64,000 nucleotides of DNA from Macrostomum lignano (GCA_002269645.1 NIVC01000621.1:62001-126000), one strand, 5' to 3'; shown: positions 7,901 through 49,900, numbered from the stretch's first letter. Notes: generated by a model from the sequence alone, not told the origin. Translations and numbers: made by a program.

Positions 7901-8074
7901 AATCCGAGTGATTTATCTTCGATTCTATGGCTACCCGAGTGATGTATCTTCGATTCCATGGCTACCCGAGTGATTTATCTTCGATTCTATGGCTGCCTGA
8001 GTGATTTATCTTCGATTCTATGGCTGCCTGAGTGATTTATCTTCGATTCTATGGCTACCCGAGTGATGTATCTT
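4961..8074. repeat. 31-bp tandem satellite, about 100 units (GAGTGATTTATCTTCGATTCTATGGCTACCC and variants)
   Basis: Direct reading of the unit; the 31-aa periodicity of the spurious ORFs equals 3 x 31 bp. Confidence 0.97.
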
Positions 8075-12314: not shown

Positions 12315-12613
12315 GCTGCGCTGTTTATGGGTAAACTCAAGCGAATATATACATAAATGTACACGCGCGAATACTATAACAAGCTAATATATAATATTAA
12401 CTCAGCATCACTGAAAACCGCCACCTTAGACCTCGAGCTATAGTTAAATAACGTTGCGTCATTTGCAGTGTCGTGAGATAGAGTCAATCGCTCTGACAGG
12501 TGGCGGTTTTCTATGTTGCTTAGTGTTTCTGTAGCCATTGAGTTTAACAGTTCGTTAGTGCAAAATTAAAATATGACTTTTATTTAAAGGAATCCAATTT
12601 ATTTTCAACAAAG

Positions 12614-16038: not shown

Positions 16039-16716
<678 letters not shown>

Positions 16717-16724
16717 CAGATATA

Positions 16725-16860
16725 AAGCAAAGAGCTGAAGAGAGCCGAGAAGATATGCAAACCTTTAGTGGGCCGAACGGCTGTTGTGAATTTTCAAAGG
16801 ACCCAAAGGTCGGATAGAGAGAGGCTTCCCGGGCCGCTGGCCAGAGTCTGCCAACCCCTG
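16725..16860. mobile_element. 3' portion of a hAT-like MITE
   Basis: Ends in GAGTCTGCCAACCCCTG; homologous to 25620-25744 and 42840-42980. Confidence 0.65.
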
Positions 16861-17073
16861 ACCGGTACAATGTAGAATGTACATCTATTCAAGTTGGCTT
16901 AATCTTGACCGGATTGCAGCCTCTCAATATTTTCTATCTCAACAATTCGTTCAATTGTCTCAATTCGGCCGTCTATACAGGAGGCCCAGCAGCAAAAGCG
17001 CACTACACTGTTGGCCCTCTTGTGTACGTTCTGTCTATCCAATTATTCATATCTGTTACCAGTACACTTTGGC

Positions 17074-20083: not shown

Positions 20084-20461
20084 AGGTGGTTTAGAGGTGA
20101 CTAAAGTGTGTAGACTATAATGACGTGAAGCTAGACAGTAAAAAAGATATTTTACTGATATTGCCTCTGCAGACTACTAAGAGTAGTAATTGAATGTTTT
20201 TTTACCGAAAAGCTGGATACTCTTGCTAAACTATAATGTTGAAATAACAAGGCTCCGATTTGTATCTTTTTATATTAATTCTACGACCATCTGAGTGAAA
20301 TATTTTTCATTTTTACTTTAGAACCATTGTGTTGGTACCCATATTTATTACCAACTAGAAAATTTATGTAATAAGCTGCGGTATATACCAACTACAATGC
20401 AGTAAACAATGGAAATTTCTGACGATTTCACATAATCATACTACAGATAGCAGCGCATCCG

Positions 20462-20551
20462 ATGGAGAATGTACTGCCAAGGCAACAAGAAAGTCGGTAT
20501 CTTCCGCAGTCTGAACCACCTCCACCCGTGATTGTAACAGTTCCAACTTAT
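20462..20551 (+). CDS. Leader exon paralog MENVLPRQQ... (lacks Gly2)
   Basis: Homologous to the leaders at 30315 and 31374, with the same short 5'UTR intron and a phase-0 GTAAGT donor. Confidence 0.55.
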
Positions 20552-22334
20552 GTAAGTTCATATTGTACCATCAGTTGGTAAGTTTTCCTTTAGTTTGATT
20601 TAAATAAATTGGAAAAACTGTTCTGTAAAAGTGAGTTCGGAAAGTTTTCACTGAATTTGCAAAATTTGAGAAAAAATATGGATCAGAGAGAGACGACGCA
20701 GCAGACGGAGTGAACGGTCGGCATAGCAGGACTTTTCAGGTTCAATGGCTGTCCAGTTTAATATTTTCTAATCAAATTTAGAATGGGTTCTGAAGCCTCT
20801 TGACAAATTGAGCAACTGTAGCGGAGCACTCGGTGCAGTTCAAATAATAAAAGAAAATAATTGTAACTTAATTTAACTATTAAATTTATTAATAATTATT
20901 CCAGGTTATTTATTTGATTGTCAAATAACAGATTGACAATTTGATTGACAAATAATTATATAACTTATATTAAAGTTACTAGGGTACAGTCTTGGCGGCG
21001 GTTGAGTTACTATGTTCAATATACTAATATAATCCAATGTTTAATTCAGCTTGGGTTGGCTCTATAGCCTAAAGGGGAAATAGACTTGTCTAGTTAGGAA
21101 CACGGCAACGAGGGACGACGAGCGCGAGGAGAGGAAGAGCCTACACCAAAAAACATGAAACTCTCGCACTCAAAACCGCACCAAAACTGACCCACTAAAA
21201 CCTCCAAACCTACTACAAAAAATGGTAACCAAAATAATAGAACAGTACATAAAATAATGGACAGAATTTTTCCTAGAACTTAACGTAAAAAGGCTTTCCC
21301 CCTAACCCCATATTAATTAGAAAAAATCTATTTAGGTACAATAAAAAACGGATAGAAACTAAAAATATTATAGCATAACGACATCGTCACAGCAATATTT
21401 GACTCAGAGCTACTATTGGTGGGCGATTCTGCCTATTTGGTGGATGCTTTATCGAAGAGGTGGCAAACGTTGAGCTCGTGTGATTCGTCCAGTTTCACTT
21501 TCATTTATTTTTTGGAGGATGAGTGACTGAAATTTGCGGAGGAGTGGGCAAAACTTTGCAGTCAAAAGTTTTTAAAAGATTTACTTGAGGTAGTCCTCAG
21601 GCAATTCCGAAGCACTCCGAAAGGACAGGAGCAATAATAAATCAAGTGTTTAAATCATGGGCAGCAATAAGATTCAAATATGCATTAGGTTTTCGAATAT
21701 ATGATGCTCTAGTACTCATTAAATATGGATGTTGCCATGTTGACTGTGGCCAAATCTTGTCAAGACTTGTCTCGAGATCCCTCGGCCTGCAGCAATCAAA
21801 ATTATGGATAGACAAAACTGCCCTTGAGTAAGTGTTTAAATAAGTGTTTCGAATTAACGACGCTGGCGACGGCGACGACAGAGGCTGCGGCATCCAAGGC
21901 GGCTACTGGCCCGGCAGCTACGTCGACATCGCCGTCTGCATCTCTATAGTTTATTCTTATAATAACTCTGTTGCTACCGGTTTTACATTTTAGAGCACTT
22001 TTAATTTATTTATTTCTCTTATTGTATTCTCTTGCACCTGTTTTACTCTTACCCTGTAGTACTTATACAGTCTAACCTAAGAATTAAGTCTCTGTACACT
22101 TTACAAACCTACATGGACCACTTACAAATATACAGGCGACAGAGCCAAATTTTAAAACGGCTGACGCGCGGCCAGAAAGTTGTCGGCTTGGCACTCCCTT
22201 GGCATACTTAATAACGAACGAACCTAGAAAGGCATCCGTTTGCGTCGCTTTTAACTTAAAGACTAATCAAGGTATTTAAGGTGAAAGAAGGGAACAGGGA
22301 AATAAGGGATCACTAGGAACAGGAATAGTGTTGC

Positions 22335-22600
22335 ACAAGAGGAGTCTTGCCTCTAAAACGGGAGTCTCGCCCGAGCACTTAGGAAACATAATATTAATGT
22401 AAAAACAACCTTTTGTATGTTAACATTTTCTATTAAATTTTGTGTCAAACTTAAAATATTTCAATCGGTGTCCTGACTTACTTCTTTAATATCTAAAAAC
22501 TAGAATTAGGGAAATCAGGGACCTGGTGGCAGCGAATCTACCAACCTACCCAAATACGAGTAATGCACTAAAATAGTAAGTAGACAAAAACAGTAGCCTA
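22335..22600 (+). mobile_element. Probable LTR 3' part plus PBS remnant, second copy
   Basis: Homologous to 14538-14830; TGGTGGCAGCG at 22524. Confidence 0.4.
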
Positions 22601-22762
22601 AACCGACAGACCACGACTTGTCCAAATGCTCAGTTGAAAGGAATAAAACTTAGGTGCGTAGATTACGAGTATAATGACGGCGAGATAGACTAAAAAACAA
22701 AGCAGAGACAGAAATTTACGGGCTGGCAGAGCTAAACCAGATGAAAATTTCATTTCCCTCAG

Positions 22763-24783
22763 AATCGCTATCGCCGAAACCCTCATTCAAAATGGGAACG
22801 CCACTGCGATCAGAATCAGTTTGACGCGTGTGACTTTAGTGGTCTGCAGTCCCGCGGAAGATGGCAAAGCGAGACCGACTTGCGAGATCGATCGGATGAC
22901 AGAGACAATTGGGGCGAGAGCGATAGAGGACAGCGCGATGGAGGAAGGGGACGCCACGATACGAGGAGAGATGTGGGTCATCAAAACTGCATTGTCGTTG
23001 TACTCAAACAGATTATGTAAAATAGTTGTAAAAATGTTTTTAGAACAACCGCGAAAGTCCTTGGAGAGATCGAAGTCGTGAATTCTCCAACAGCCAACAT
23101 GATCTGAGAAGCTGGGATGAGACCGACAGTGAAGACAGCGACAGGAATCGAAATGGCCACCTCGATGGAGGAAGGCGCAACCATCGGAGAGAATATCATA
23201 GACGCCGCGGGCACTATAGAGAGAAGGTGAGTCTGATCTTGTCTAGGATATTTCAAAACACTCAATATAGTAGTTCAGACATCTAGTCTTCCATGGAATA
23301 TAGACAACCGTTATAGACAACATGAGAGACACATTCAGTCCTCCATGAGAGACAAATTCGGGATTAATGAGAGACATATTCCGGCTTCCATGAGACACCC
23401 AATCTTCGAAGTGACGATCTAAAACGCCGTTTTTCAAGACTACGACCAAATCATTCTATTTCATTATGACGTTTTGATCCAGCTTTGATACAGGATTTCC
23501 TCCTCAATCCCATCTGCAGCAGAAAGTTCGGCATTTTAACTGCGGACACTGGGAGAAGCTGGATCGTGAAGCCTCATCTCGGCTATTCAGCAACGAGTTC
23601 TGCTCCAAATGCTGGCCGCTCACCGCCCAGATGCAGCGGAACGGCCTGTTTAGTCGACCGAGAGACGACGACCAGGTCAAGCGAACAATGCTGTCGGACA
23701 CTGACCCTGAAACCTCTCTGGAATACATTCAGGTGCTGGACAGGGTGACCAGATACGTCAAGCCGGAGCACAATATCAGAGTGAGAATTCGAAGCATCGA
23801 GAAGATTGAAAACCCGGTGTTGGACAGGCGGGTCTATCACGTGTACGACCAGCTGGTTAAGAAAAACAGCGAGCCACTCCTGCTCATCCACGGCACGTCT
23901 AGAGACGTAGCAGAGAAGATCATCCAGGAAGGCTTTCAGGTATCTAAAGTTGGCACCAAATATACTTTGTATGCCAGGGCTGTGGGTGCCCTGGGCAGGG
24001 TGGCGATTCTGCTGACCATTCGACGGCTTTCCCATCAAGCACTACTAGCCTACAACAATTTGCTCCTAGTGGTCCTTTACTTCCATTACAGTATGAGAAA
24101 CAACACAAGTCAGGCAAGCGCATGTAATTCTCTTAAACTACAGGTGTTTAGCGTCAGTTAGAAGCTAAACTAAGTGTCAGTTAAAAAAAATTAGGGAGCC
24201 TACTGCAACAGAACGACTCTTGCCGGATTGCGGATCGTTATCCCATTAAAACTGTATGATTACAACCACACCAGAAACTTTGCTGTTAGCGACGTTGGCT
24301 ACTGTCATTGTACATATGACAGGTAGTCATTGTACCGTTTACGGCAATAGTTAAACTCAGATACACACCAAACAATCTACCAGTGCATGTACAGTGTGCT
24401 AAATGCTATAATTTCCGATAATTCGAATCTATATGTATCTGAAATTTTCAAATGACAATCTCTAAAACGCTACACACAAGGTTGGCACCAGAGGCATGTA
24501 CGGAGCAGGGATCTACTTTGCAACAGACACAAGCAAGAGTGCACAGTACGCTAGAGACAGCGGCGTCAAGACCCTGCTCCTGTGCAACGTTGTGCTCGGC
24601 AAGTACATGGTGTGCAACTCACCCAGAAACGACCTGAACTTGCAGACTGTTGTGGCCGCCGGTTTTGACTCGGTGTTCGCCAAACGGAACTCGAGGGGAA
24701 CCGGAGGCGTGTTAAACGACGAGTACATCGTGTACCGGCCTGAGCAAGCGTCTCCCAGGTATCTGGTGAAGTTTAAAGTCTGA
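22763..24783 (+). CDS. Linker + PARP-type ART, copy 2
   Basis: Open phase-0 exons 22763-22972, 23044-23226, 23520-23939 and 24481-24783; motifs IHGT, GIYFA, NDEY. Confidence 0.82.
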
Positions 24784-25335
24784 GCTGCGCTGTTTTTAGG
24801 TTAACTCAAGCTAATATACAGCTAGCTATACTATATAAGCAACATTGAAACCATCACCCTTGAACCCAGTGCGTCTTAGTGAGAGTTGATCGAATAACTT
24901 TGCATCATTTGCAGTGTCGTGGGCTGAAGTCAATCGCCCTGACAATTTACTGCCGCTCTAGGGTGGCAGTTTTCCATGTAGCTGAGTATGCTTGTAGCCA
25001 TCGAGTTAATAGTTTACTCGCGTAATACCAAAAGATGCCTCTAAATGGTCTAGATCAATCGCTTCGCGAATGAAAGACTTGTTGCTCATATTGTATCTTG
25101 TGCTAGCTAAACATAATTATAATCCCAGCATAGAAACAGAACAATGTTTATAGATTTGCATACATAGCATGTATGTTTAATCTGATGGCTAATTTATATT
25201 TTTTGACATGTTTAGCTATTGATATTTGGTGCCGATAACAGCGATTTTTTAACCATCAAGTGTTATGGTATTTGCCTATTTGCCCGTTTGGTTTGGTTTG
25301 GTAATTTATCCTTCGACTGTAACTTATGTCCAAAT

Positions 25336-26503: not shown

Positions 26504-27291
26504 TCACGAAGTTGTGAACTTGACTAAGTATCGTGGTGTAGCTTGATCAGTCCGGTAGACAATGTACTCGTCATTGAGCACACCTTGACTTGATTTTGTT
26601 CCTCGTCTAGCGAACACCGAGTCATAGCCCCAATTCTGTACGGTCTGCAGGTTGAGGTTTGTTTGGGCAGATGTGCAGATCAGCGTCGTTCCTAGAAGCA
26701 CCTCGCATAAAAGCAGGGTTTTGACGTTATTATCCTTAGCATATTGGACACTCTTTGAGGTGTCCGTGGCAAAGTAGATCCCTGCGCCAAACATTCCTTG
26801 CTTGCCAATATTGAAGCCGTTGCTAATGATGTTCTCAGCGGCGTTGCTGCGCGTCCCGTGAATGAGCAGCTCTGGAATGCAGTCCTTTTTATGCAGCTGG
26901 AAAAACGCATCATAAAGACGCTGGTCTAATACCGGGTTGCAGATTCTCTCAATATGCTCAGGATGCTGACGCTAGTGTTGTACTCGGGTTAAACATATCG
27001 CAGGACCCTGTCGCAAATGCAATGGTACTCAGCGACGGTCTGTCCGTTTGTTGCTGTGATGGGGACGCGCGTGACTCGTGTCGTTGATCCGGAATGAAGT
27101 AAGTGCGCAAGATGGAGCTCGGTAGCTACAGACTCGCATTGTACCTCGTAAAGTGACCTCGGCTAAAGTGAGTAGGACACAAGAAAAGGGATAAATTAAT
27201 AAAAATTACAAAATACAATTTCTAAGAAAAGTAAAAGCTGTCAAAAAGTTGTTTTCACCGTCGAACGCCGCTTGCTGAAACAATTTCCCAT
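26504..27291 (-). pseudogene. Minimal acylated ART: MGNCFSKRRST micro-exon plus ART exon with one nonsense codon and one frameshift
   Basis: Exon 27259-27291, a 96-nt intron, then exon 26504-27162. In-frame TAA at 26989-26991 and a frameshift near 26954. Motifs IHGT, MFGAGIYFA, LNDEYIVY. Confidence 0.78.
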
Positions 27292-28227: not shown

Positions 28228-29508
28228 TCAGGCTGTGTTGAACTTGATGAGGTACCTCGGGGCAGCCTGCCTCGGGTCGTACACGACAAACTCATCGTTG
28301 AGCACCCCTCGAGTCTCCCTGGAGTCCCTCTGAGCGAACACGGAATCAAAGCCTTCAGCTCTTAGCGTTTCAAAATTGAGATCATTTCGAGCAGTTCGAC
28401 ACACTTGGTGCTTTCCAAGAAGCACATCGCACAGCAGCAACGACTTGACGCCGGTGTCTTTGCAGTACTGCGCGCTCTTGGTGCTGTCCGTGGCGAAGTA
28501 GATCCCTGCGCCGAACATTCCACGATTGCCTAAAATGAAGCCATCGGTAATGATTTTCTCGGCATTGATCTGCCTCGTTCCGTGGAACAGCTGCTCCGGC
28601 GGACAGTTGCGGTTGTGCAGCTGGCGTCGAAAATCCCGCATCCGCCTATCCAGCACAGGATTCTCAATACGCTCGATGCTGCAGATCTCCTTGATGACAA
28701 CTCCGTGCTCAGGTCTGGTATAGCGAATAACGCGATCTTCAATTTTCAAATACTCGGCCGAAGTTTCCGACTGGCTCTTTGATAGCATGGTTCGGACAAC
28801 TTCCGTTGAATCCAAAATGCTGCAGCTGCTGATCTGGAAGAAAATTTAAATGGAGCTAGCTAATATAAGTACAAAGCGTCCTTGTGCTTCGGTTGTCCAT
28901 GCTGGAGACTTCTATTGCAATAGCCATACATTGTATAGTAAAACTCTAGGCTCTTAACATTGGTATATCAAAACTTGAAGTCAGAGGATACTTGATAAGC
29001 ATTGACCCCGACAGGTGTAAAGTTCATTTAAACGAGACTATGAATTGTTTCTCTGATTAAAAACGTACCGAAGATCGGTTTCCAGCGCTACCGGACTCCA
29101 GCACTCGGCGGATGTGCTGCATCACAGAGTAAAGCGGGCCCCAAGCGTTCCTCAGCCTCTGCAGCTGCTTGTGCACCCCTTTGGGACAGTCGGCCTCCAG
29201 CATTAGCGTGTCCGCCGCCTCGGCCGCTTTCGCCAGTCGGTGCTGAGTGTTGCGCACGGACTCGTACAGCAGCTGGTTGTGGCATAGTGGATTCATAATT
29301 TTGATTCAACAAAGCAGAATTTCTACTATAGACTTTCTGAGAAAGAAAATTACCATTAAAATTTTCTCTTCATCAGCCGGATCCTGTTTTCCGGGTTTGA
29401 AACATTCCTTTAAATTTTCCAGCTCGCATTGCGTCTTGCGCATCAGTTTTCGATCCTCTTTCGTCAGGAGTTGAAAGTCCTCGTAGGCGGCCAATCGTGT
29501 AGCGGTAG
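28228..29508 (-). CDS. Spectrin-like repeat + PARP-type ART, minus-strand copy; first exon not found
   Basis: Exons 29354-29508 (phase-1 start), 29069-29272 and 28228-28833 splice in frame. Motifs LQRLRNAWGPL, FHGT, MFGAGIYFA, LNDEFVVY. Confidence 0.82.
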
Positions 29509-29723: not shown

Positions 29724-30314
29724 TTTAACTTCATAAACTCGTAATGCAACTTTAATTCAAACGCATGCTTGCTTAGTTTTCTTGCACTTGCATGTTTTAG
29801 ATGCCCATCGTTCATAAAAATCACTTATGATTCAATAAAACGGAACTCCGAAACTTACGGAAATGTTCTGCGGTACCTCGTAGGCATTTGCGGCAAAATT
29901 AATCTGCAGCATGGAATCGACTGCTAACTAAAGTAAATCTTACCGATTTTACTGATGACTAATACTCAAAAAATTTAACTACATGCTTTACTCTTTCCAC
30001 ATTGACAACCACTTTAAAAGTACAACAGAACAATTGCAGAATTGATATACATCATGAAAGAAACCACTCCTGACCAATAAGGTTGAAGTTATAGCATCTC
30101 CATCTCCTAGCATACCTAGAGTGTACGTACGCCGTTTTATTGTGGGTAGACAATGGGGGTGAACTTTCGAATCATTGTGTAAGTACACTTTTCATCGCAA
30201 CCTGAAGGATTCCAGTAATAGCTACGGTATATTAATATTAGTATATACCAACTGCAACGCGGTAAACCTGTCTGTCTTTATTTTAAATTCATACTGCAGA
30301 GAACAGCGCATCGG

Positions 30315-30401
30315 ATGGGAAATGTACTGGCAAAGAAACGAGAGAGTCGGTATCCACCGCAGTCTCAAACCGAGATTAGACCCACACAATATTCAACTAA
30401 T
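30315..30401 (+). CDS. Leader exon MGNVLAKKRE... (candidate alternative first exon)
   Basis: 29 codons with a phase-0 GTGAGT donor, preceded by the conserved short 5'UTR intron. Confidence 0.6.
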
Positions 30402-31373
30402 GTGAGTTTATGTTGTTACCATCAGTCAGTGAATTTTATGCTCGCACTTTAAATATTTGTCACGGGAAAATGGCTTCGGTGCTGACGGAGAGACGTCGCA
30501 TCAGACGGAATGAATGGTCGACATAGCAGGACTGCACAGGTTCAATGGCTGTTCTGCTTATTATTTTCTAATAGTATTTTATTCAACTTCAGAATAGGTC
30601 TGAATGGGTCAATTGATTTGCACAAATTTTAACTCATCAAACTACTATCACCTTGGTGGGCGACCCTGTCTCTTGGTGACCCCTGTCTCTTAGTGACCCC
30701 TGTCTCTTGGTGATCCCTGTCTCTTTCGCTATTCTTTTACGATTCTACCAGGCGCTTGTGACGCAACAGTCCCTTCTCCGTCGCATTAGACGCGTTCGAG
30801 TCGCCCAAAAGTCGCTAGAGTAACTAGAGAGTTTGAGTAACTGGAACAACTAGAATAACTACTCGTAGAATAACTACGAGTAGAATATAAAGGATACTAA
30901 AAAATAAGAAAACTGCGCATTCTATATTTAGCACTCGCATCATAAAGTGCTCAGATACAAGGTATCAAACTAAAGTGCGTAGACTATAATGACGTCAGTA
31001 AAGCCAGTAAAAACTAAAACAGATTTCTACTGACATTGCCTCTGCAATCTACTAATAGTCGAATCGCATATTATACAGAAAACCTTGCCTAATACTTTAT
31101 ACTGACTCATGCTTTACACTTCGGAGCACTGGACGTTTGTTTCGTTTGCTTCGTGTTTGTATCTTTTTAAATTGATTCTTTGACCATCTGGGTGACTATC
31201 TTTGATTATGCGACTTTAGAAGCGTTTTGTAAATGCATACAATATATTTATTGCTACTCAAAAATTATGTGCGCTCGTAATGGCTATGTTATATACCAAC
31301 TGCAATGCGGTAAACAAAGTAACAATTTCCGAGTTCGTTTTACATAATCATACTACAGATACCAGCGCATCCG

Positions 31374-34300
31374 ATGGGGAATGCATTGCCGCAACAACAG
31401 CAGAGTCGTCAGCAGCCAGCGCTGTCTCAACCCGAGTTAAAACCAACACAAACTACAACAAATGTGAGTTCATATTGTACTATTGATGGTGTGACCCCTG
31501 TTTCTTTGTGTGACCCCTGTTTTTTGTTGTGACTCCTGTCTCTTGATGACCCCGGTCTCCTGGTGACCCCTGTCTCTTGGTGTGACCCCTGTCTCCTGAT
31601 GACCCGTGTCTTGTCGGACGCCCCTGTTTCTTGGTGGCGCCTGCTTATCGCCCACTTTCTAGAAAAAGCAAAAGCTTCCGTTATTTATCAAATTTATCTT
31701 TTAGCTTTTAGATGAAATATAAAAAACAGCATTTATATCTTATCACTTGCATTTATCACTACGCGCTCAATATATTTACTTAACATAAAATACTCAGTTT
31801 TTGCAATTCTACGAGTAAATTATTTCAAACTAAAGTGCGTAGACAGTAAGAAACACAGAAGATTTTACTGATTTTGTCTGTACACAGTACAATGAATTAA
31901 ATGCACGATTTGACCAAAAAACTTAACTAAGGATCCCCCAAGAATCAAACTGGACAACACGGACGAATTCGATGCTCAACGGCGGTCCGCTAATGATTGG
32001 ATCAAGAAGAAGCACGTAGAGCTGATGGATTTGGACACTGACAAGGGGACGAATACGGAAAAGGCTCGACGGCTTCGGGTTTGTATATTGAAGTTCGAGT
32101 AAAAATTGATTGTACGACCATCTGAGTAATTTATCTTTGATTTTATGGCCATCGGACTGATTTGCTTGTGATTATATGACTTAGATGAGTGTAATTATCA
32201 TAATTTCAATGACTATTTAACCTCTTCCACACTTGATACCTTTGGGTCTCATTTAAGGATTTCAATTTGTTTCAGAATTGTTGCTTGAACTCTTTATGAT
32301 CGTGGGAGTTTTTCTCTTGATTCAATTTGAAGTGATTTCCTTTTCTTCAATGACCGTTCAGAGTTTGGATGATCTCAGATGATCTCCGATGATTCCATGA
32401 GCGTCTGACTTATTCTCTCGGATTTTAATGAACTGATTAAAGGATTGTTCTAAAAGCTCTTGTGACTACCTCCTTTAAGGACATCGAAGCCTCTCTAGAC
32501 GAAGGCGAAGATCTACTGTCAGCGGCTGCTGTAACGGCCGAGCAAATGATGCAGCGAAACACCTGTCCATTTCGAGTTGGTCGTCAACATCTCCAGCTTG
32601 TCCAGTCCTGGTCCATGCTGATTAGCTTGTTTGAGCGACTGAAGAAGGAAGTCTACGCAGCTGATAGCTGTCAGGATGGAAGGAGACGACGGGACGGCGA
32701 AGTAAGTGCTGTTTATTGTTCAACTTTGATTTTGGAGAGCAGAAGGTAGCAACTGAAAATCTGGAAGGTTTGGATAATTTGGAACGATCAGCTATTCTCA
32801 TTATGTAGCTCTTGTATCATGATATTCCCTGCAGATACAAGGAATCATTGTAAAGTTCATGGACTATATTAATGACGTAAGAAAGCCAGTTAAGAAACAA
32901 ACAAGATTTCTACAGTCTACTGCGAGTAGAAACGCACGTTTTTATACCGAAGCTTTTGACTAATATTTAATTGACTAATACTTTAGACTTTAAAGGACCG
33001 GATTATTGTATTATTTATTTTTTATGTCGATTCTACGACCATGTGAGCGACTTATCTTTTTGATTTTATGACATTAGCAGCGTTCTGTAAGAACCTATAT
33101 TAATCGCAACCTGGAGAAATCATGTACAATAGCTACGCTACATACTAACTGCAATGTGGTAAACAATGTAACTGAAAGGTAGTTTGAAAACTTTTACTCA
33201 GCTTGCCAAAGGCAGCTGGCTACGGTGTGCGGACGGAGAGGCGACGGGTCAAGAGGTCGACATAGCAGGACTGCGCAGTTTCAACGGCTGTCCACTATAT
33301 TATTTTCTAATAGTGTTTTTAATCAACCATAGAATGATTCTGAATCAATTGTAGATTGATTTGAACAAATTTTACTCACCAAGCTGGCGATCTTGGGGCC
33401 TTTTTATAAAGCCATCCTAAGATAAGATCGATCTTAGCCATTATCTTCGCAGTCTTCCGACGCACGATCGAACTTACGCTACGACAGCTTTAGAGTACGA
33501 CCCTCTTGTCTCTTGGTGGACTCCTGTTTCTTAATTGGTGCGCGTACCTGTGTCATGGTATGCGTCTCTCTGTCTTGGTGGGCGCCCTTTGTGTCTCGAT
33601 GACCCCTGTCTTTTGGTCGGCGTTTCTGCCTTTATCTCCTGGTCCGGTGGATGCCCCTTCCAAGAGATGGCAACAGCTGAGCTCCTGTCATTCGTCGAGT
33701 TTCGTCAGCTTTAGCTTTTATGGAGTATACCGATCTGAAGTCAATGAACTTTTATGTCTAGTCGTTCCCTCAGCGTTAATTTATTTTTTCACCCAAACTG
33801 TTGCCGAATCTTTTAAGGCTCGCCTCGGCTTATCTCGATAAATAGACAAGCTTAAAACTAAGCTATGTTTAACTAATAAGCTCTTCGATCTAAGGTAGAG
33901 TCGCAACCATAGATCTTATATTCCCTAGATGAGACCAAACTTCTCTAAGCGAAGCCCTAATAAATCCACTAAATGTGAACAGGTTTGATCTCAAAATTCT
34001 ATAGGAATTATTTGAGCTTCGCTTCCTGAGGAGCGAAGCAAACATAGAGGCTTCCTTGGATCAGTGCATCCATTTTTGGCCATGGTTCTTTGATCCCCAT
34101 ATGTGGTATGTATTTTGTTTATTTTGTTCAACATTGCAGTCGCCTGCATTAAAAAAAGCGGAAAAGCTCAAAACCCTGGCGTTGTTCATTTGCTGCTGAG
34201 CACAGCTCACACATACGAATGGCTGGCATCTGCATCATGGATGAAAGAATAGAATAGAATAGCAAAGCTGCGCATTTCTTCGTCATCACAGAAAAGAATG

Positions 34301-37300
34301 TCTGTGTCCCTCGGCTACTGAAGTTAATCATTCAGTGACTGTGATTGGTTTAAATACTCGTATTTTTTAGCTTTTTTCGGGGTCAGCTTTTTAGCGTAGA
34401 TCCAATAGAGACTGGCCCATCTACGGATGACGATCTATGGTCTTAATGCAGAAACGCAAAAATTTTGTTTTTTGGAAGAAAAGTAAAAATATTTATATAG
34501 TTATTACTCGCATTTCTCACTATGCACCCTATACTTTAACTTCCATCATGAAATGCTCCGTTCTCAATTCTAAATTCTTTCAAACTCAAGTGCGTAGACA
34601 GTAAGAAACACAGTAAGATTTCACTGATTTTGTCTGTACACAGTACAATGAATTAAATGCACGATTTGACCAAAAAACTTAACTAAGGATCCCCCAAGAA
34701 TCAAACTGGACAACACGGACGAATTCGATGCTCAACGGCGGTCCGCTAATGATTGGATCAAGAAGAAGCACGTAGAGCTGATGGATTTGGACACTGACAA
34801 GGGGACGAATACGGAAAAGGCTCGACGGCTTCGGGTTTGTATATTGAAGTTTGAGTAAAAATTGATTGTACCACCATCTGAGTAATTTATTTTTGATTCT
34901 ATGGCCATCGGACTGATTTGCTTGTGATGCTATGGACATCTGACTGATTTGCTTGTGATTCTTTGGCCATCTGACTGATTTGCTTGTGATTCTATGGCCA
35001 TCGGACTGATTTGCTTGTGATTCTATGGCCATCGGACTGATTTGCTTGTGATGCTATGGACATCTGACTGATTTGCTTGTGATTCTATGGCCATCTGACT
35101 GATTTGCTTGTGATTCTATGGCCATCTGACTGATTTGCTTGTGATTCTATGGACATCTGACTGATTTGCTTGTGATTATATGGCCATCTGTCTGATTTGC
35201 TTGTGATTCTATGGCCATCTGACTGATTTGCTTGTGATTCTATGGACATCTGACTGATTTGCTTGTGATTCTATGGCCATCTGACTGATTTGCTTGTGAT
35301 TCTATGGCCATCTGACTGATTTGCTTGTGATTCTATGGACATCTGACTGATTTGCTTGTGATTCTATGGCCATCTGACTGATTTGCTTGTGATTCTATGG
35401 ACATCTGACTGATTTGCTTGTGATTCTATGGCCATCTGACTGATTTGCTTGTGATTCTATGGCAATCTGACTGATTTATTATTTGATCTAGGACTTATAT
35501 GAGTATAATATATAATAAGTCCTCATACTTATCTGAGGACTTATCTTCATTTCAATGACCATTTAGAGGATTTCAATTTGTTTCAGAATTATTATTTGAA
35601 CTCTTTATAATGGTATGAGCTTTTCTCTTGATCCAATAGAAGTTTGAGTTATTTTCTTTTTTATAATGACCATTTAGAATCTAGATAGTCTCGGATGATT
35701 TCATGACCACCTGATTTGTTCTCTCTGAAATTATTAAACAGATAAATTTTTATTCCAAAGGCTCTTGTGATACCTCCTTTAAGGACATCGAAGCCTCTCT
35801 AGACGAAGGCGAAGATTTACTGTCAGCGGCTGCTGTAACGGCTGAGCAAATGATGCAGCGAAACACCTGTCCATTTCGAGTTGGTCGTCAACATCTCCAG
35901 CTTGTCCAGTCCTGGTCCATGCTGATTAGCTTGTTTGAGCGACTGAAGAAGGAAGTCTACGCAGCTGATAGCGGCCAGGACGGAAGGAGACGACGGGACG
36001 GCGAAGTAAGTGCCATTTATTATTCAACTTTGATTTTGGAGAGCAGAAGGCAGCGACTGAATATCTGGAAGGTTGGATTATCTAGATCTGAGTTACGGTA
36101 CTCACTGAAGTTTTCAGCGGCTGCTGTCGTTACTGATGGTCTGGAGGTTTGGAGAGGGTAGCGGACTCACTAAAAGTCGGGAGAGGAAAACGGTACTGAC
36201 ATGTACTGTGTTATGTTACCCATTGTACGAGCGTAGGTGATGAAGCTGAAGTAAGCATTCAGCTTCTTATTAACTGGCTGGCAGAGCTACACCACGTGGA
36301 ACTTTCCTTTCCCACAGAACCGCTATCGACGAAACTGCGATCAGAGTCAGACCCGCGGAATATGGCAAAGCGAGACCGAGTTGCGAGATGGATCGGAAAA
36401 CAGAGACGATTGGAGCGAGAGCGACAGGGAAAGGCGTTATGGCGGGAAGCGACACCACAATGCGAGGAGAGATGTGGGTTATCAAAACTACTTTGTCGTT
36501 TTACTCAAACAGTCGTATTACTCAAGCAAACAATGTAAAATAGTTGTAAACATGCTTTTAGAACAACTGCGAAAGTCGAAGTGCTTGGAGAGATCCAAGT
36601 CGTGAACTTTCCAACAGCCAAGATGATTTAAGACGCTGGGCGGAGACAGGCAATGAAGAGAGCAACAGGAATCGAAATGGCCGCGTCGATGGCGGTAGGC
36701 GTAACAATCGAAGAGAGTATCGTAGACGCCGCGGCTACTGTAAAGAGCAGGTGAGTCTGATCTTGTCGGCCAGAAAATTATTCAAAAACACTCAATGTAG
36801 TAGCTTGTAGTAGTTCAGAAATCTAGTTTCCCATGAAACATAGACGGACGTCTTCTATGAAAAGCACATCCATTCTTCCATGAGAGACGCATTCAGGCTT
36901 CCATGAGACACATCAAATCTTCGAAGTAACGATCTAAAACGCAATTTCTTAAGACTGCAATCCGACCATTATTAACAATTCTAGACTGTTTTGTCCAAAT
37001 TCGACACCGGATGTCCTCCCCAATCCCATATGCAGCAGAAAGTACGGAATTTCAACTGCGGCCACTGGGAGCCGCTAGATTTTGAAACCTCATCTCGGCT
37101 AGTCAGCAACGAGTTCTGCTCCAAATGCTGGCCGCTCACCGCCCAGATGCAGCGGAACGGCCTGTTTAGTCGGCCGAGAGACGACGACCAGGTCAAGCGT
37201 ACAATGCTGTCGGACACTGACCCTGAAACCTCTCTGGAATATATTCAGGTGCTGGACAGGGTGACCAGATACGTCAAGTGGGAGCACAATATCAAAGTGA

Positions 37301-38578
37301 GAATTTTAACCATCGAGAAGATCGAAAACCCCGTGTTGGACAGGCGGGTCTATCACGTGTACGACCAGCTGATTAAGAAAAACAGCGAGCCACTCCTGCT
37401 CATCCACGGCACGACTGGAGACGTAGCCGAGAGGATCCTCCAGGAAGGCTTTCAGGTATCTAAATTTGGCACCTACTAATATAAGTGCATGTCAGCTGCA
37501 TATGCTTTGTGCAGGGTGGGCGATTCCGATGACCATTCGGTTGTTTTCCCATCGAGGACTACAGGCCAACAACAATGTGCTCCTGGTGGTCCTTGTATTC
37601 CATTACAGTATGAGCAAGCACACAAGTCAGTCAAGCGCACGTAATTCTCTTAAACCAGGTTTTTAGCGTCCGTTAAAAATCAAGGGAAACTGATACAACG
37701 AATGGCGTATCGTTATCCGATTAAAACTGTATGGTAAGAGCCACACCAGAAATTTTGCCGCGTAAGAGACCTTAGCTACCGTCATTGTATGAATGACGGG
37801 TAGTCATTGTGAAGTTCTTCGTCCATTATTTAACTCAGTTACATATTTGTATCCTAGTAAGGGGCTTATAGCCTAGTGGTTAGAGTGTCGGACTCACGCT
37901 CGGGGGTTCGATTCTCGACCCACTCGGAACAATTCATATGCTTGAGCAAGACACTTAACTATGCCTTGCTTCAGTTTACCCAGCTGTGAAATGGGTGCCA
38001 GCATTAGCTGGGGTAATTGAGGGTGTGTGTGGTGACCCCCAGTCCTTGGACTGAACAGCCGTACGCAGCCTTCAGATGCGCCGTGCAATAGCTGTTGGTT
38101 TCACATCTTACCCAAATGGGTTGTGCGATAAATTATTATTATTATTTTATAGTTAAAACCTACCAGTGCATGTACAGTATGCTAAATGCTATAACCTCCG
38201 ATAATTTGAATCTATTTTTAAATGAAAATCTCTAAACCGCTGTACACTATTAAGGTTGGCACCAGAGGCATGTACGGAGCAGGGATCTACTTTGCAACCG
38301 ACACTAGCAAGAGTGCACAGTACGCTAGAGACAGCGGCGTCAAGACCCTCCTGCTGTGCAACGTTGTGCTCGGCAAGTACATGGAGTGCAACTCACCCAG
38401 GAACGATCTGAACTTGCAGAATGTTGTGGCCGCCGGTTTCGACTCGGTGTTCGCCAAACGGAACTCGAGGGGAACCGGAGGCGTGTTAAACGACGAGTAT
38501 ATTGTGTACCGACCCGAGCAAGCGTCACCCAGGTACCTGGTGAAGTTTGAAGCCAGATCTGCGCTGTTTTTGGGTTAA
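31374..38578 (+). CDS. Met-Gly leader + duplicated spectrin cassette + linker + PARP-type ART, copy 3 (most complete model)
   Basis: Open phase-0 exons 31374-31463, 31932-32078, 32480-32701, 34688-34834, 35784-36005, 36318-36473, 36562-36750, 37036-37455 and 38255-38578. This gives 638 aa with both cassettes or 515 aa with one. Confidence 0.78.
34872..35480. repeat. 31-bp minisatellite (GGCCATCTGACTGATTTGCTTGTGATTCTAT), about 19 units
   Basis: Direct reading; third variant of the same family. Confidence 0.93.
37861..38147 (+). mobile_element. tRNA-derived CORE-type SINE in the ART intron
   Basis: A box TAGCCTAGTGG, B box GGTTCGATTC, MIR-core-like TTGAGCAAGACACTTAAC...CAGTTTACCCAGCTGTGAAATGGG, and an (ATT)n tail. 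Confidence 0.8.
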
Positions 38579-38649: not shown

Positions 38650-38935
38650 GGGGGTTGTAGTGTGGTGCGGTTGTAGCGTCGTACTCACGACTGAATTGAA
38701 ATTTTTTTGAGGGTTCGTGCCTTTGAGCAGGACACTTAACTCTACATTGATTCGGTTCATCCAGCTGTAAAATGGGTGCGAGCATTGGCTCAAAAATTGA
38801 GGGTGTGTGTGGCGACCCCCCCCCCCAGGTTTTCGATTGAACAGCCGCACGCAAATTTTAGATGCGCCGCGCAATAGCTGCGCTGAGGTGTCAGTTGTGC
38901 ACCTGGCAGGTGTAAGCAATTGTTATTACTATTGT
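38650..38935 (+). mobile_element. Second, more decayed CORE-type SINE
   Basis: Colinear with 37861-38147 across the core and the 3' body. Confidence 0.72.
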
Positions 38936-43289: not shown

Positions 43290-43592
43290 ATGGGCAATCA
43301 GGCGAGCCGGAGATCGACTGCCAAACTTGCCAGGAGCAGAGCGAGCGTGGCTGCCAGGAGCAGAGCGAGCGTGGCTGAGTCATTGAACCCTACCAGCAGT
43401 CACTTCGACTACACTGTTCCTGAAAAGTTGCAGAAAAACATTGCTCATTCAGCAGTTTTTGATAGATTCTGTCGAACAGCCAAAGAGCATAGAAAATCGT
43501 CTGCGAGCTATTGTGAAGAAATTGATTCTGCATTGCTCAGATTACAGACCGAACAGCCTCTGCCATTGACGGAGAGGAGAGATGCTGGTTTG
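43290..43592 (+). CDS. Orphan leader exon MGNQASRRS... (101 codons), paralog of the 17192 leader
   Basis: The promoter, TATA (43176) and first about 25 codons resemble 16860-17270. There is a phase-0 GTAAGA donor at 43593; no downstream exon was recognised. Confidence 0.5.
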
Positions 43593-44775
43593 GTAAGAAT
43601 TTCATTTACACCCCTCATTAACAACTATCGTAGATGGACACTTACACTCGTTAATGGAGTGATTTGTCTGCAAAATGAATCATCGATGAAGAGAGTTTTT
43701 AGCCCCGAGTTTTTTAGCGTCCGAGTAGCAAATAGAGAAATTTTTCAATTTATCCAGGTTGATCACTAAGTTGGCTTAACTAGCAGAAGGTAACACACAA
43801 TTCTCCAAATGAAAATTTAAAAAAATTTTTGGTTGCACGCCGTGAAGTAAGAGTGAGACAATGTTAATTTATTGTTACAAGCATCTCTATTTATACATGT
43901 GCCAGGTTTAATTTTACTGTTTTCTTCGCTTACATGATAGAACGACTTTCAAACACACTGGCCTCGAAAGGCCCTATTACGAATGTGAAGTGCACCCTGA
44001 GGCACTTTGCACATCTCAAAGCTCGCCGTACGGAATCCGAATACTAGCTTTTTGCTGTCAGTTTGAGTTTCGGAGTAGTTGACTGAATCGAGAGCTGACT
44101 GCGAAAAGCTATATTATTCAAGGCTGTATTTTATAGTCAACAAGATGTTAAAACACGCTGATTTTGAACCCGCAAAATTTAAATCCCTTCAACTTTAACT
44201 ACTTTTGCATACATTATAAAATCTGAAGTCATTTCTCAAAGAAAATTTTTTAATAGTTACTCGTAGTCACAAAATTGGGCTAAATTCGTGTGAAATTTAG
44301 ATTTGAGACGTGCATTGATCTCGTCGGCTGGGGTGCCCCGCGTATAATGACAGACAACTCTGTTTAAAGAATGCGTTGGAAAACTCTGGCCATTGGCCTC
44401 TCTTTCCTTCCCTTGGTAATTTGAAAATTTTATCCTATCTTTCCTATCTTCGCTCCTTACTCTTCTCTTCTCCCTCCTCTCTCTTCTCTCTTTTCCCTTC
44501 TACCTTCTCTTTCCTCTATCCATTCTTTTCTCATCTCATATATCATCTCGTCTCTCTCATCTCTCATCTTACCTCTCCCCTCTCCTCTATTATCTCTACT
44601 CTCTTAATATCTCTTCTCTCTCCTCTATTCTTTGCCATTTGCTGACTGATTTTTCAAGCCTTTTGCCCAGTTCATGAGAGAAATTTGTGCAGCTTCAGCT
44701 CCACCGTAGAAGTCAAGAAACACAATACGCTTTCTTTGGAGGCATTTAAAATTTCAAATTGGCTTCAGATAAAAA

Positions 44776-46060
44776 CTAGCAATCTTCGCCCCCCGTTGGG
44801 GGGCATCTGTATAGAACCTCTGCTCTCTACAAGTAACAAAAAGATCGCCAAATAAAGCCTTCACAAAGAAAACAGACAAAATACTCAAATGAAGTGCAAT
44901 GCAAAAAGAAATCATCCCAAGACAGCAAGCATCCCCCAGATAGCAAGCATCCCCCAGACAGCAAGCATCCCTCAGATTGCAAGCATCCCCCAGATTGCAA
45001 GCATCCCCCAGACAGCAAGCATCCCCCAGACAGCAAGCATCCCCCAGATAGCAAGCATCCCCCAGAATGCAAGCATTCCCCGATTAGCAAGCATCCCCCA
45101 GATAGCAAGCATCCCCCAGATAGCAAGCATCCCCCAGATAGCAAGCATCCCCCAGATAGCAAGCATCCACCAGACAATAAGTAGCTAGTGCGACAATTTC
45201 CTTAGCATTATAGTGGCTCCTTTAAAATTCGCTTACTTTTACGTTTTAAATTGTGTAACTTTTATGTTTAACATGGCGGCTCTTTAATGTTTTACATGGT
45301 GGCTCTTTTAATGTAGGTTTGACATGATGGCTCTTTAATGTCTGACATGGTGGCTCTTCTATGTTTGGCATGGTGGCTCTTTTATGTTTGACATGGTAAC
45401 TCTTTTATATTCGATATGTTGGCTCTTTAATGTTCGACATGGTGGCTCTTCTATGTTTGACATCGCGCTTTTTTATGTTTAGCAGTTTTGTGTTTTTAAG
45501 GTGTTTTAATAAAAAAATATTTTTGCACTACTAAGATTCGAACCCAGGTCGCTACATTAACAGTCCAGTAGTCTGTTCTCATCCAGGCTATCTCTTTTCA
45601 ATTGGAGAACTTGAATTGTGGCCCTTATAATTCAATTCTTTCAGAAAGTCAATTGGAGTAAAAAGTTATGAGATAATCAATTTCTCAGTCAGCCAGTATA
45701 TCAGTCTCAATTTAAGTTAGCGATATTGGCTACGCAATTTAAATCAAGTCTTGTGTGCATTTCTTCGGCACTGTTTTCAACTTGTTGTATGCAATCTTTA
45801 TCACAATCGGAATTCAGCCAGTCAGTTTTTTCTCTAGCATTCTTACAATGCATTCCAGGTCGAAAGAGCTGCTTGACCTTTGCAAAAAAGCATGTTTTTC
45901 AAATATTTAATCCCTTTAACACTGAGCAATTTTTTAGCCACGATTCATGTACCGTCCCAGGAAAATTTCTGATCGAATGGTGCAACTTTGAAGAAAATCG
46001 GTTAAGCCATTTTTTCTCAAATCTATCGCATACCTACCCACAGACAACTCATTCTCTCTC
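44776..46060 (-). mobile_element. Non-autonomous Helitron with an 18-bp repeat; twin of 53534-54474
   Basis: 3' CTAG preceded by the hairpin GCCCCCC-AACG-GGGGGC; internal (CCCCCAGATAGCAAGCAT)n at 44925-45175. Confidence 0.8.
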
Positions 46061-46952: not shown

Positions 46953-49900
46953 TCTACATATACTAAAGTTCACGTGTTGTTTGTCTGTCATTTCGACAAC
47001 TCCTCCTTGAATAGTGGCAACTCAGCGTTGAAACTTATACGAGCATGGGAAGATTGGAAATTATCCGAGGTCGGCTATAGGCTATTTTAATTTTGAAATT
47101 TTAATTTCTAAGATCCTCAAAAAAGCAGAAAACTTGAATCTTGACCTTTGATAATCTTAATTGTCCCCTCTTTCTGCTTGGAGCTGAAAAATGCAAGAAT
47201 TTTTAGTGATTGCGCCACAACTTTTCCCTATCTCTGTAGTGTATTTTCTTTCCAGTGGGGGGTGGGAGCGTTCTCAGTGGCTGCGTGTGTACACTTGGAC
47301 CCTGGCTCACTGGCTGACTTTATAGATAATTGCGCAATGATATGGCTACTGATAAGTTTTCCTGCCTCTCAATGGGCAGCCCTGTGTATTTGTTGGACAT
47401 TGAAATTCAATGCATCAACTTGCAAGCAGGCAGTGAACGTACACTCGATACTTCAATGCTATAAATCAGACAGTTTCAAACGCTAACTGTTCCTCGAGTT
47501 TTAAACTTTGAGAGGAGAAACTTATATTGCTGGAAAGATCTTGCAACACTGAGTTCGGGGATATAAGTTGTTTGCTTTAAATATGAAAAGAAAAAGCACA
47601 GCATTTGAAAAACGATTTCCATACTTTTAACTTTCTGCAAAGATTGTACTTTAATCTGCAAAGATTGTTGGGGGGAGGGTTCAACTTCTCACTGCTGCTG
47701 TGTATTAGAGGGTTGATTTAGATTGCGCAATGTTTTTGTTAACTTTACCTGAGGCTGATACTGACTGACTGTGAAATCGGTTGCGCAATGAATTGATTCA
47801 ATTAGTTCAATATTTTTATCTGTGCCTTTTAACACGAAGCTGTGCGTAGTTCTAACCCTAACCCTAACCCTAACCCTAAGCCTAACCCTAATGAATCTGG
47901 CGGGTTGAGTTGTTTGACGGAAAAAATTCGATTAAGTCAAGTTTAGCGGAGACGATTTCAATGTTTAAATTCTGACGGAGAAGATTTCTGTTTCGTGGAG
48001 AGGATTTCGATGGTGTTCAGTTTCACGAAAGGATTTCCATGGTGTTCAGTTTCACGGAGAGGATTTCGATCATGTTCAGCTTCACGGAGAGGCTTTCTGT
48101 TTCTCGGAGATAATTTATGATTGATTTCTGTTTTATGGAAACAATTTTGATGGATTCAGGTTTCAAGGAGAGGATTTCGAAGGAGTCCAGTTTCACTGAG
48201 AGGATTTCGATGGTTTTTAGTTGCACAGACAGGATTTTTGCTTCGCGGAGAGGATCTTGATGGATTTGGCATCTTCAATCAGTCAGAGAAGAGAGTAAAG
48301 AGAAGACTGAAAAGAGAAGAGAGAAGAGATGATAGAAAACAGAGTATAATTGAGTGGAGAGATTAGACATGACAGATTGGAGATGATAGGAGAGAGAATA
48401 GATGAGGGATAAGAGCGTACAGAGGCAATAGAAGAGAGGGGAGAGTAGAGGAGAAAGAAAGAGTGAGATGAGGAGATGAGGGATGAGAGAGGAGGGGAGA
48501 GAGGAGACAGGAGAGAGTACAGACGAAAGACTAGGGAGAAGATATAAATAAGGTAGTAAAGATGAGAGGAGAGAGAGGAGAGAGAAGCGAAAGGAGAAGA
48601 GAGTGAGGAGAGAGGAGAGAGATGAAAGGAGCAAGGAAAGGAGAAAAGAGAGAATGGAGAGAATAGAAAAGAGAGAAGAGAAGAGACAGGGGATAGTGAA
48701 AAGGAGGAAGAAAGATGGGAGACAAGAAAGTAGTGTCAGAGCGTATATGAAATATGAGAAATGAGAGCAGAGAGAAGAGAAAAGAGAAGAGAGAGAGAGG
48801 GTTAAGAGAGACGATAGATAAGTGAGTAGAGATGACATATGAGAGAGGAGAGAAGAGGGAGAGATAAGAGTGAAGAGAGGAGACAGAAGACAGGAGAAGG
48901 TACAGACGAAAGACGAGGGAGAAGAGATAAATAAGGGAGCAGGGGTAGAGATGAGATGAGAGAGAGGAGAGAGGAGATATGAGAGACTTGAGAGTCTTTG
49001 AGCTATGGTCTTTGAAAGATTTTGTAAAGAATTTGGAGACGATTTGGAAGATAGGGTTAAAGACATGGAATTTCAGTTGATGGATATTACAGGGAATAGA
49101 ATTCCGGTGATGGGAGTTCTTCCCCTTTCTCCTCCGAAGGAGGAGTTCCACTCGTACATATACTAAAGTTCACGTGTTTTTTTTCTGTCATTTCGACAAC
49201 TCCTCCTTGAATAGTGGCAACTCAGCGTTGAAACTTATATGGGAAGATTGGAAATTATCCGAGGTCGGCTATAGGCTATTTTAATTCTGAAATTTTAATT
49301 TCTAAGATCCTCAAAAAAGCAGAAAACTTGAATCTTGGCCTTTGATAATCTTAATTGTCCCCTCTTTCTGCTTGGAGCTGAAAAATGCATGAATTTTTAG
49401 TGATTGCGCCACAACTTTTCCCTATCTCTGTAGTGTATTTTCTTTCCAGTGGGGGGTGGGAGCGTTCTCAGTGGCTGCGTGTGTACACTTGGACCCTAGC
49501 TAACTGGCGGACAGTGAAATTCAATGCATCAACTTGCGAGCCTCTTTAGCAGGCAGTGAACGTACACTCGATATTTCAATGCTTTAAATCAAAAAGTTTC
49601 AAATGCTAACTGTTGCTCGATTTATGAACTTTGAGAGGAGAGACTTATATTGCTGGAAAGATCTTGCAACGCTGAGTTCAGGAATATAAGTTGTTTGCTT
49701 TAACTGTAAAAATTAAAAGCACAGCATTCAAAAATGATTTCTTTACTTTTAATTTTAACTTGCTGCAAAGATTGTACTTATTTTTGCGATAGGTCAGAGA
49801 TAAATTTAGGGGGTTCAATTGCCAATTGCCACTGCGTAGTGGAAGGCGGTCGGGCGCTGTGTATTAGACGGCTGATTTAGATTGCGCAATGTTTTTCTTA

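Follow-up and report, generated by a model that had tools for sequence, protein, structure and literature searches.

A candidate PARP gene of Macrostomum lignano with two putative alternative first exons and two near-identical spectrin-like cassettes in a tandemly repeated locus

We analysed a stretch of 64,000 nt from the flatworm Macrostomum lignano (GCA_002269645.1 NIVC01000621.1:62001-126000; hereafter the window, with positions counted from its first letter), and focused on positions 30315-38578 of the plus strand. This region probably represents one protein-coding gene of M. lignano or of a very close relative, and it seems rather likely that this gene belongs to a lineage-specific PARP (ARTD) family, which is arranged here in a tandem cluster. 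The structure that we favour, with a little more confidence than doubt, is that of a single gene in which either of two first exons can be used and both spectrin-like repeats are retained by default; promoter use and the default inclusion of both cassettes are predictions from the sequence. According to the proposed history, a module consisting of promoter, leader, intron 1, a repeat element termed R and the two cassette exons Sa and Sb would have been duplicated in tandem to give three units, A, B and C. Unit A would have kept its promoter and leader, with a single R in place of the cassette, unit B would have stayed complete, and unit C would have lost its TATA-like element and leader while keeping its cassette. 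Either of two first exons, both provided with a TATA-like motif and a GT donor of their own, would be spliced to the Sa exon of unit B, and both tandem repeats would by default be included together, giving H-Y-E type PARPs of ~637 aa (from leader L1) or ~638 aa (from leader L2). Since all exons are symmetric (phase 0-0), a single open reading frame (ORF) would be retained. Gene conversion would keep the cassette exons nearly identical, and the duplication itself would not be young.

We re-derived the exons from the sequence and checked each for an AG acceptor, a GT donor and a length divisible by three. All exons have AG/GT borders and lengths that are multiples of 3, so that every junction is phase 0, as a first-pass annotation had stated for the leader, spectrin, linker and ADP-ribosyltransferase exons. 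The leader exons L1 (30315-30401, 87 nt, MGNVLAKKRESRYPPQSQTEIRPTQYSTN) and L2 (31374-31463, 90 nt, MGNALPQQQQSRQQPALSQPELKPTQTTTN) both end in the donor AAT/GTGAGT (the slash marks the exon border). Cassette B consists of the exons SaB (31932-32078, 147 nt), which codes for helix A and the beginning of helix B in the modelled fold, and SbB (32480-32701, 222 nt), which encodes the remaining helix B, helix C and an Arg-rich tail; cassette C consists of SaC (34688-34834, 147 nt) and SbC (35784-36005, 222 nt). The linker exons K1 (36318-36473, 156 nt, Arg/Asp/Glu-rich), whose encoded linker is probably disordered, and K2 (36562-36750, 189 nt, Arg/Asn-rich) precede two catalytic exons. A1 (37036-37455, 420 nt) contributes a Cys/His motif (CGHW...CSKCW) as well as the N-terminal half of the PARP domain with its HGT histidine, and A2 (38255-38578, 324 nt including the stop) encodes GAGIYFA with the Tyr and NDEYIVY with the Glu. 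The annotation had also described the 147-nt exons as identical and the 222-nt exons as differing at a few sites. Indeed, SaB and SaC are identical at 147/147 nt, and SbB and SbC differ at five sites, three of them silent and two within one codon that changes Cys to Gly; cassettes B and C thus differ by 1 amino acid. SbC carries the SGQDG variant, which is the form found in UniProt A0A1I8GHA6. The general outline of one locus in which two leaders with an ATG and two spectrin-like cassettes share a single PARP-type catalytic end is therefore supported. One exon border had to be revised. The A1 acceptor had been placed at 36985, which would extend the exon to 471 nt (36985-37455). We rejected this position as the main acceptor, since both paralogs in the window (gene 1 and gene 2, see below) carry stop codons in the first 17 codons there and lack the AG, and since two M. 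lignano database models join ...GYCKEQ/QKVRNF, which corresponds to an acceptor at 37036. The acceptor in use is most likely this pyrimidine-rich site (...atatgcag/CAGAAAG), with which the phase is still 0. The strongest acceptor in the locus is that of K1 (tttcctttcccacag); the Sa exons have a weak acceptor (ctaag/G, without a pyrimidine tract) and a weak donor (GTTTGT). For six independent introns, an all-phase-0 pattern has P ~0.01-0.02 at the usual phase-0 frequency of ~0.45-0.5. The pattern is notable, not extreme, and partly an ascertainment effect, because in-frame duplication is possible only for a symmetric 0-0 cassette.

Database proteins gave independent support for the 3′ half of this model. 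Only ten matches came out of a search of 5.8 billion proteins, and the top three of these are from M. lignano. UniProt A0A1I8GHA6 (P0011) is identical to the spliced SbC-K1-K2-A1 model at 330 of 336 residues; the mismatches comprise 2 substitutions (P>L and E>K) and 4 C-terminal differences, its C-terminus VSKFGTY being read-through into the intron after A1. This match independently confirms three splice junctions, including that of K1, as well as the organism. A0A1I8GHA6 and A0A1I8GHB1 (P0001) show 98% identity over the shared exons and represent this gene or its homeologs; together with the window, P0001 and P0011 make up at least three near-identical versions, which differ by 2-3 residues around SDTDPETSLEY. 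The M. lignano database models of this gene are fragments which start in Sb, end in intron read-through and contain only SbC-K1-K2-A1; neither L1, L2 nor Sa was found in any protein in the same search.

The 5′ half of the locus is a tandem triplication in which each unit has decayed differently. A promoter-proximal motif of 24 nt (TATACCAACTGCAAYGCGGTAAAC), for which 0 occurrences are expected by chance, is present at 30244, 31292 and 20384 and, with 3 mismatches, at 33141. In unit A (30244-30267, plus strand) a TATATA overlaps the 5′ end of the 24-mer at 30241-30246, in unit B (31292-31315, plus strand) the TATATA is intact, and the copy at 20384 stands ~70 nt ahead of the leader of gene 2. 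With an ATG, a GTGAGT donor and this conserved 24-mer with TATATA ~70 nt upstream of the ATG, L1 and L2 are plausible alternative first exons. The 24-mer of unit C (33141-33164, plus strand) has decayed, with TATATA changed to TACATA, and the leader is deleted directly downstream: ~150 nt are missing relative to unit A, no ATG leader follows 33164, and homology resumes where 33255-33385 matches 30516-30643 in intron 1 of unit A. The leader deletion reported near 33170 was thus found as described, and the conclusion that the leaderless unit cannot start on its own is probably right, given the lost leader and the altered TATATA.

The order of elements within the units further defines the array. 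Unit A contains the motif, L1, intron-1 sequence, one R and a spacer, with no cassette; unit B contains the motif, L2, intron 1, R, SaB, SbB, a further repeat copy (R′) and a spacer; and unit C contains the decayed motif, no leader, intron 1, R, SaC and SbC, followed by K1. The R copies before Sa (31830-31931 and 34590-34687) are homologous to R′ after cassette B (32830-32945, plus strand), and alignment of the R copies places cassette B between homologous direct repeats. At the site occupied by the cassette in units B and C, unit A has a single mosaic copy (30950-31060, plus strand), which may be the product of recombination between flanking repeats or may reflect a unit that never bore a cassette. 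Moreover, 30952-31323 matches 32832-33172, so that the remnant of R′, spacer and promoter after unit B corresponds to the spacer ahead of unit B. Unit C also has a private intron segment of 1.1 kb (33386-34470) that matches nothing else in the locus or the window. A 31-bp minisatellite of 19.5 copies (604 nt; 34874-35477, plus strand) fills part of its Sa-Sb intron, and ~2 copies are present in unit B.

The age of the cassette duplication was addressed by comparing cassettes B and C with each other and with the one cassette of the paralog gene 1. In the intron upstream of Sa, B and C are 87.6% identical to each other and 73-75% identical to gene 1, in the Sa exon 100% and 86%, and in the intron downstream of Sa 94% and 68-74%. 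The intron upstream of Sb shows 78% between B and C and 79-82% to gene 1, the Sb exon 97.7% and 91%, and the intron downstream of Sb 88% and 88-89%. Around Sb, the distance between B and C therefore equals the distance to a different gene (gene 1; synonymous distance ~0.2). A perfectly identical tract of 229 nt (31867-32095 and 34623-34851, plus strand) covers Sa together with 65 nt of the upstream and 17 nt of the downstream intron. The five variable sites of Sb are patchy, as gene 1 has the letter of B at two of them and that of C at the other three. Because diverged introns coexist with near-identical exons, the comparison points to gene conversion within an older duplication, with the 229-nt tract as the putative conversion tract. 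Two origins had previously been offered for the identical exon: gene conversion is the one favoured here, while a very recent duplication was rejected, since the introns of the cassettes are only 78-94% identical.

The cassettes were further characterised at the level of protein sequence and fold. Sa and Sb together encode 123 aa, which match Pfam Spectrin (PF00435) with 20.3 bits (positions 4-101 of 105); the whole protein reaches 24.9 bits and misses the gathering score of 29.9. The same profile is the best match for four diverged modules in the cluster (17.2-28.2 bits). When the cassette sequence was searched against PDB chains, only chance-level matches appeared (a de novo TIM barrel, E 0.054; MCMV M144, E 1.7). 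Since this search was uninformative, the spectrin call rests on the sub-threshold Pfam match, a structural model and Foldseek. A single-sequence AlphaFold2 (AF2) model of L2 with both cassettes (mean predicted local distance difference test score, pLDDT, 73.8) contains helices at residues 38-66, 71-104 and 109-148 and again at 162-189, 194-227 and 232-266, with helix pLDDT mostly 77-92. In a Foldseek search of the PDB, the top 29 matches are all spectrin, alpha-actinin or plakin repeats (best 1cun_A, E 4.5e-4), and the single repeat 3f31_A superposes at 1.9 Å over 102 columns. The model thus suggests that the cassettes are spectrin-like three-helix repeats: the earlier label "spectrin" would hold at the fold level and does not hold at the Pfam profile level (17-28 bits versus 29.9). 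Residues 143-161 between the repeats are modelled as non-helical with low confidence, single-sequence AF2 being weak on inter-domain geometry. The Sa/Sb exon boundary falls inside modelled helix B, and because each single exon cuts through this helix, only the Sa+Sb pair would form a structural unit.

At the catalytic end, Pfam PARP (PF00644) matches with 77.6 bits (E 1.2e-21, gathering score 26.7; the match covers 3-198 of the 199 profile positions). Among solved structures, PARP4 and tankyrase-1/2 are the nearest in sequence (PDB chains, E 2e-10 to 1e-9). LLIHGT, GAGIYFA and NDEYIVY align with LFHGS, GAGIYFA and AEYVIY of tankyrase-1, so that the H-Y-E triad is intact, with residue assignments that we take to be those established for PARP1 and tankyrase. 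NAD+-dependent ADP-ribosyl transfer is the predicted activity of the protein. The ratio of nonsynonymous to synonymous substitution (dN/dS) between paralogs is 0.22-0.24 for the catalytic exons and 0.39 for the cassette, and by this measure the catalytic end is under purifying selection. From the N-terminus, the domain order would be an MGN leader, the spectrin-like repeats, an Arg-rich disordered linker, the Cys/His motif and the tankyrase/PARP4-like catalytic domain. L1 begins with MGNVLAK..., in agreement with the N-myristoylation pattern G-{EDRKHPFYW}-x(2)-[STAGCN]-{P}, and the four indels among L1, L2 and the gene 2 leader are all multiples of 3. Taken over the three leaders, the MGN start is a candidate N-myristoylation signal with mixed support.

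Two paralogs on the plus strand of the window show how the number of repeats varies within the family. In gene 1 (8603-12335), one Sa+Sb cassette is combined with K1, K2, A1 and A2; neither a leader nor a promoter motif was detectable for it, and a 3.1-kb array (4943-8071) of the 31-bp minisatellite, as in the unit C intron, immediately precedes its intron-1-like sequence (8081-8264). Gene 2 (20462-24801, or 20384-24801 including the promoter motif) has a leader (MENVLPRQQ...) that is joined in phase 0 straight to K1, and its catalytic exons share ~89-94% protein identity with those of the gene studied here. The cassette number is accordingly 0 in gene 2, 1 in gene 1 and 2 in the studied gene. 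Since paralogs carry 0 and 1 cassettes, the repeat number in this family demonstrably changes at the DNA level.

Among the database proteins, the M. lignano paralogs BOX15_Mlig023173g1 (P0003) and A0A1I8G268 (P0002) have the CGH...CSKCW motif and the PARP domain in common with the studied protein, at ~60% identity. Their N-terminal regions are helical, and an MGNFVRSQS within them resembles the true start. The P0003 gene differs in having few introns, with residues 443-909 encoded in an almost contiguous 1.5-kb stretch, and for this reason we rejected a phase-0 modular layout as a family-wide feature. Proteins of this PARP family are represented in databases by automatically named fragments only, and our literature search found no paper on a PARP with spectrin-like repeats or on this M. 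lignano PARP family.

Several points weigh against the favoured structure and history. The Sa acceptor and donor have the profile of skippable exons, and constitutive inclusion of the cassettes is not assured. Given that gene 1 is leaderless and that transposable elements abound in the region, some members of the cluster may be decaying. Myristoylation is not uniformly conserved, as L2 (MGNALPQ...) has a Pro where the pattern wants a small residue and the gene 2 leader (MEN...) has Glu in place of Gly2. Finally, consensus polishing in a neopolyploid genome that is hard to assemble could mimic the perfect 229-nt tract (PMC10733133).

The most serious competitor is regulated combinatorial splicing, which we nevertheless regard as unlikely. 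Here, two promoters combined with optional use of cassette B and/or C would generate PARP isoforms with 0, 1 or 2 repeats and two N-termini, and the repeats would serve as an adjustable spacer between an N-terminal anchor and the catalytic domain. The 0-0 symmetry keeps all exon combinations in frame, the splice sites of Sa are weak compared with the acceptor at K1, and both leaders retain ATG, frame, donor and TATA-like motif. Moreover, zero- and one-cassette paralogs whose catalytic exons are under purifying selection suggest that such architectures are viable. However, a choice between cassettes that differ by one residue would add almost no sequence diversity, skipping of a single exon would break helix B of the model, and the database models show the SbC-K1-K2-A1 arrangement only. 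The series of 0, 1 and 2 repeats is, in addition, already present in the window as separate tandem paralogs. RNA pairing of the docking/selector type was considered as a means of cassette choice and rejected, since we found only two 20-nt inverted repeats with 80-85% complementarity, which is chance level. We also noted that a 20-nt inverted repeat (31813-31832 and 33180-33199, 85% complementary) brackets cassette B in a position that could loop the cassette out; such a pair is at chance level for a 6-kb region.

A relic array appears somewhat less probable still. The locus would then be only partly functional, for example with unit A and L1 as a dead remnant or with the whole gene drifting towards a pseudogene among transposable elements, and the phase-0 layout would be inherited history without a present role. 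The losses listed above fit this picture: gene 1 lacks a leader and has the 3.1-kb minisatellite at the expected place, the leader of gene 2 has lost Gly2, and unit C has lost promoter and leader. The cassette dN/dS of 0.39 indicates moderate constraint, and the window contains both a long interspersed nuclear element (LINE) and a Helitron. On the other hand, ten of ten exons are open with canonical splice sites, the leader indels preserve the frame, the catalytic exons show the low dN/dS given above, and the catalytic triad is complete.

Trans-splicing of a spliced leader (SL), rather than promoters only, could also define the 5′ ends. In M. lignano the SL is 35 nt long and ends in ...TTGCATG, trans-splicing affects ~30% of genes, and acceptors follow the motif [T/C]TNCAG (PMC8629364). 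A CATACTRCAG sequence that fits this motif is conserved 15 nt before the ATGs of the short leaders, at 30300 (L1), 31359 (L2) and 20447 (gene 2), as CTGCAG or CTACAG, and could act as the acceptor. Extension from an SL AUG through these 15 nt is in frame without a stop (MRTAHRMGN..., MIPAHPMGN... and MIAAHPMEN...), a splice from the L1 donor to the candidate acceptor at 31359 would also be in frame, and the terminal SL AUG would be in frame with any phase-0 acceptor of the locus. The CTRCAG may, however, be plain 5′ untranslated sequence, and if translation began at the AUG of the SL, the MG myristoylation signal would become internal. We consider this explanation improbable, because a promoter at the TATA-like element, ~55 nt before the CAG, would leave a very short outron of only ~25 nt. 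No copy of the M. lignano SL itself occurs in the window.

An assembly artefact, in which the second cassette or the perfect 147-nt identity would stem from mis-joined homeologous or allelic copies or from cross-copy polishing, is similarly doubtful and, for the duplication as such, unlikely: the neopolyploid genome with its recent whole-genome duplication is described as hard to assemble (PMC10733133, PMC12869490), at least three near-identical gene versions occur in databases, and the perfect identity stops abruptly in the flanks, but the introns of the units have diverged to 78-94% identity, the minisatellite spans 604 nt in unit C versus ~2 copies in unit B, unit C has its private 1.1-kb intron segment, and the periodic A-B-C pattern is that of a real tandem array and not of two alleles butted together.

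Our analysis of the window also revealed several features besides the candidate gene and its two paralogs. A longer leader with a textbook myristoylation and polybasic start (MGNQKSKKS...; 17192-17332, plus strand) ends in the donor AAT/GTGAGT at 17332 and is followed on the same strand by spectrin-like ORFs of another type at 18675-19115 (Pfam Spectrin, 28.2 bits) and 19500-19709 (20.9 bits); this region, 17192-19709, could belong to gene 2 as an alternative 5′ part further upstream, or could form a gene of its own. On the plus strand at 43290-43769, an ORF of 159 aa begins with MGNQASRRSTAKLARS. It has no Pfam match, and the sequence ahead of it is homologous to that ahead of the leader at 17192. 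Two intronless copies of the PARP catalytic domain, without the A1/A2 intron, lie on the minus strand at 28228-28815 and 26516-27078. Both are ~65% identical to A2 of the studied gene, and the former is an intact ORF of 195 aa (Pfam PARP, 98 bits).

Repetitive sequences are found both within and around the gene. A pair of short interspersed nuclear element (SINE)-like sequences with a tRNA-like 5′ part (78.6% identical, plus strand) is located in the A1-A2 intron (37942-38094) and just past the stop (38723-38880); no tRNA was called in this pair by ARAGORN or Rfam, and tRNA and Rfam scans of the window found nothing. The LINE-type retroelement occupies the left end of the window (177-2903, minus strand; Exo_endo_phos_2 and RVT_1 domains), and the Helitron lies near the right end (58618-61418, minus strand; Helitron_like_N and Pif1 2B domains). 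Long arrays of simple or low-complexity sequence comprise a tetranucleotide-type repeat at 15996-16870, which translates as ...SIYLSIYL..., and short-period repeats at 44827-45177 and 53529-54036 with the translation ...SGGCLL.... The stretch 48000-52000 is strongly GC-skewed (skew ~0.4).

Each of the ingredients is familiar in itself, namely PARP genes, spectrin-like repeats, exon duplication, gene conversion and alternative first exons. Provided that the gene model holds, the locus would offer a clean, datable case in which a symmetric exon pair encoding one protein repeat was duplicated in frame and then homogenised through gene conversion, as well as an example of how complementary decay of tandem duplicates can lead to a single gene with alternative first exons. 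It would also represent a PARP architecture, with an MGN leader, spectrin-like repeats and a tankyrase-like H-Y-E domain, that we did not find described in the searchable literature. The general interest is modest and no long-standing question is opened; the locus could serve as a textbook-type case and help the annotation of M. lignano, where the existing gene models are fragments. A much broader view appears speculative and improbable to us: the family would be flatworm-specific and consist of membrane-anchored, N-myristoylated PARPs with a complete H-Y-E triad in which the symmetric phase-0 cassette is a length-adjustable spacer, and the repeat number would be reset both by DNA recombination and conversion between the R repeats on either side of the cassette and at the RNA level, through alternative first exons, exon skipping or SL trans-splicing.

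Among known systems, the predicted protein resembles tankyrase-1/2 and PARP4 in its catalytic fold, as judged by sequence, and its H-Y-E residues align with those of tankyrase-1. However, tankyrase has ankyrin repeats and a SAM domain and PARP4 has BRCT, VIT and vWA domains, none of which is present in the studied protein; instead it has the MGN leader, the spectrin-like repeats and the Arg-rich linker. A Pfam scan of the full model found neither Ank nor SAM, only PARP and the sub-threshold Spectrin match, and we rejected membership in the tankyrases, as no ankyrin or SAM domain lies N-terminal to the catalytic domain. Identity to solved PARP structures is low, and we claim no orthology. With spectrin, alpha-actinin and plakin repeats (PF00435) the cassettes share a module of ~105 residues with three helices. 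Spectrin rods typically have a continuous helix between repeats; here the single-sequence model predicts, at low confidence, a disordered Arg-rich linker.

At the level of gene organisation, UGT1A and the clustered protocadherins are loci in which tandem alternative first exons are spliced to common exons. The candidate gene resembles this type in its tandem first exons, which have their own upstream motif and donor and no strong acceptor, and in its common downstream exons; it differs in having two potentially usable first exons only, which encode 29-30 residues and not a whole variable domain. Mutually exclusive exon arrays of the Dscam type differ from the locus in another respect, since here both cassettes can be included jointly in frame and no docking/selector pairing enforces a choice between them.

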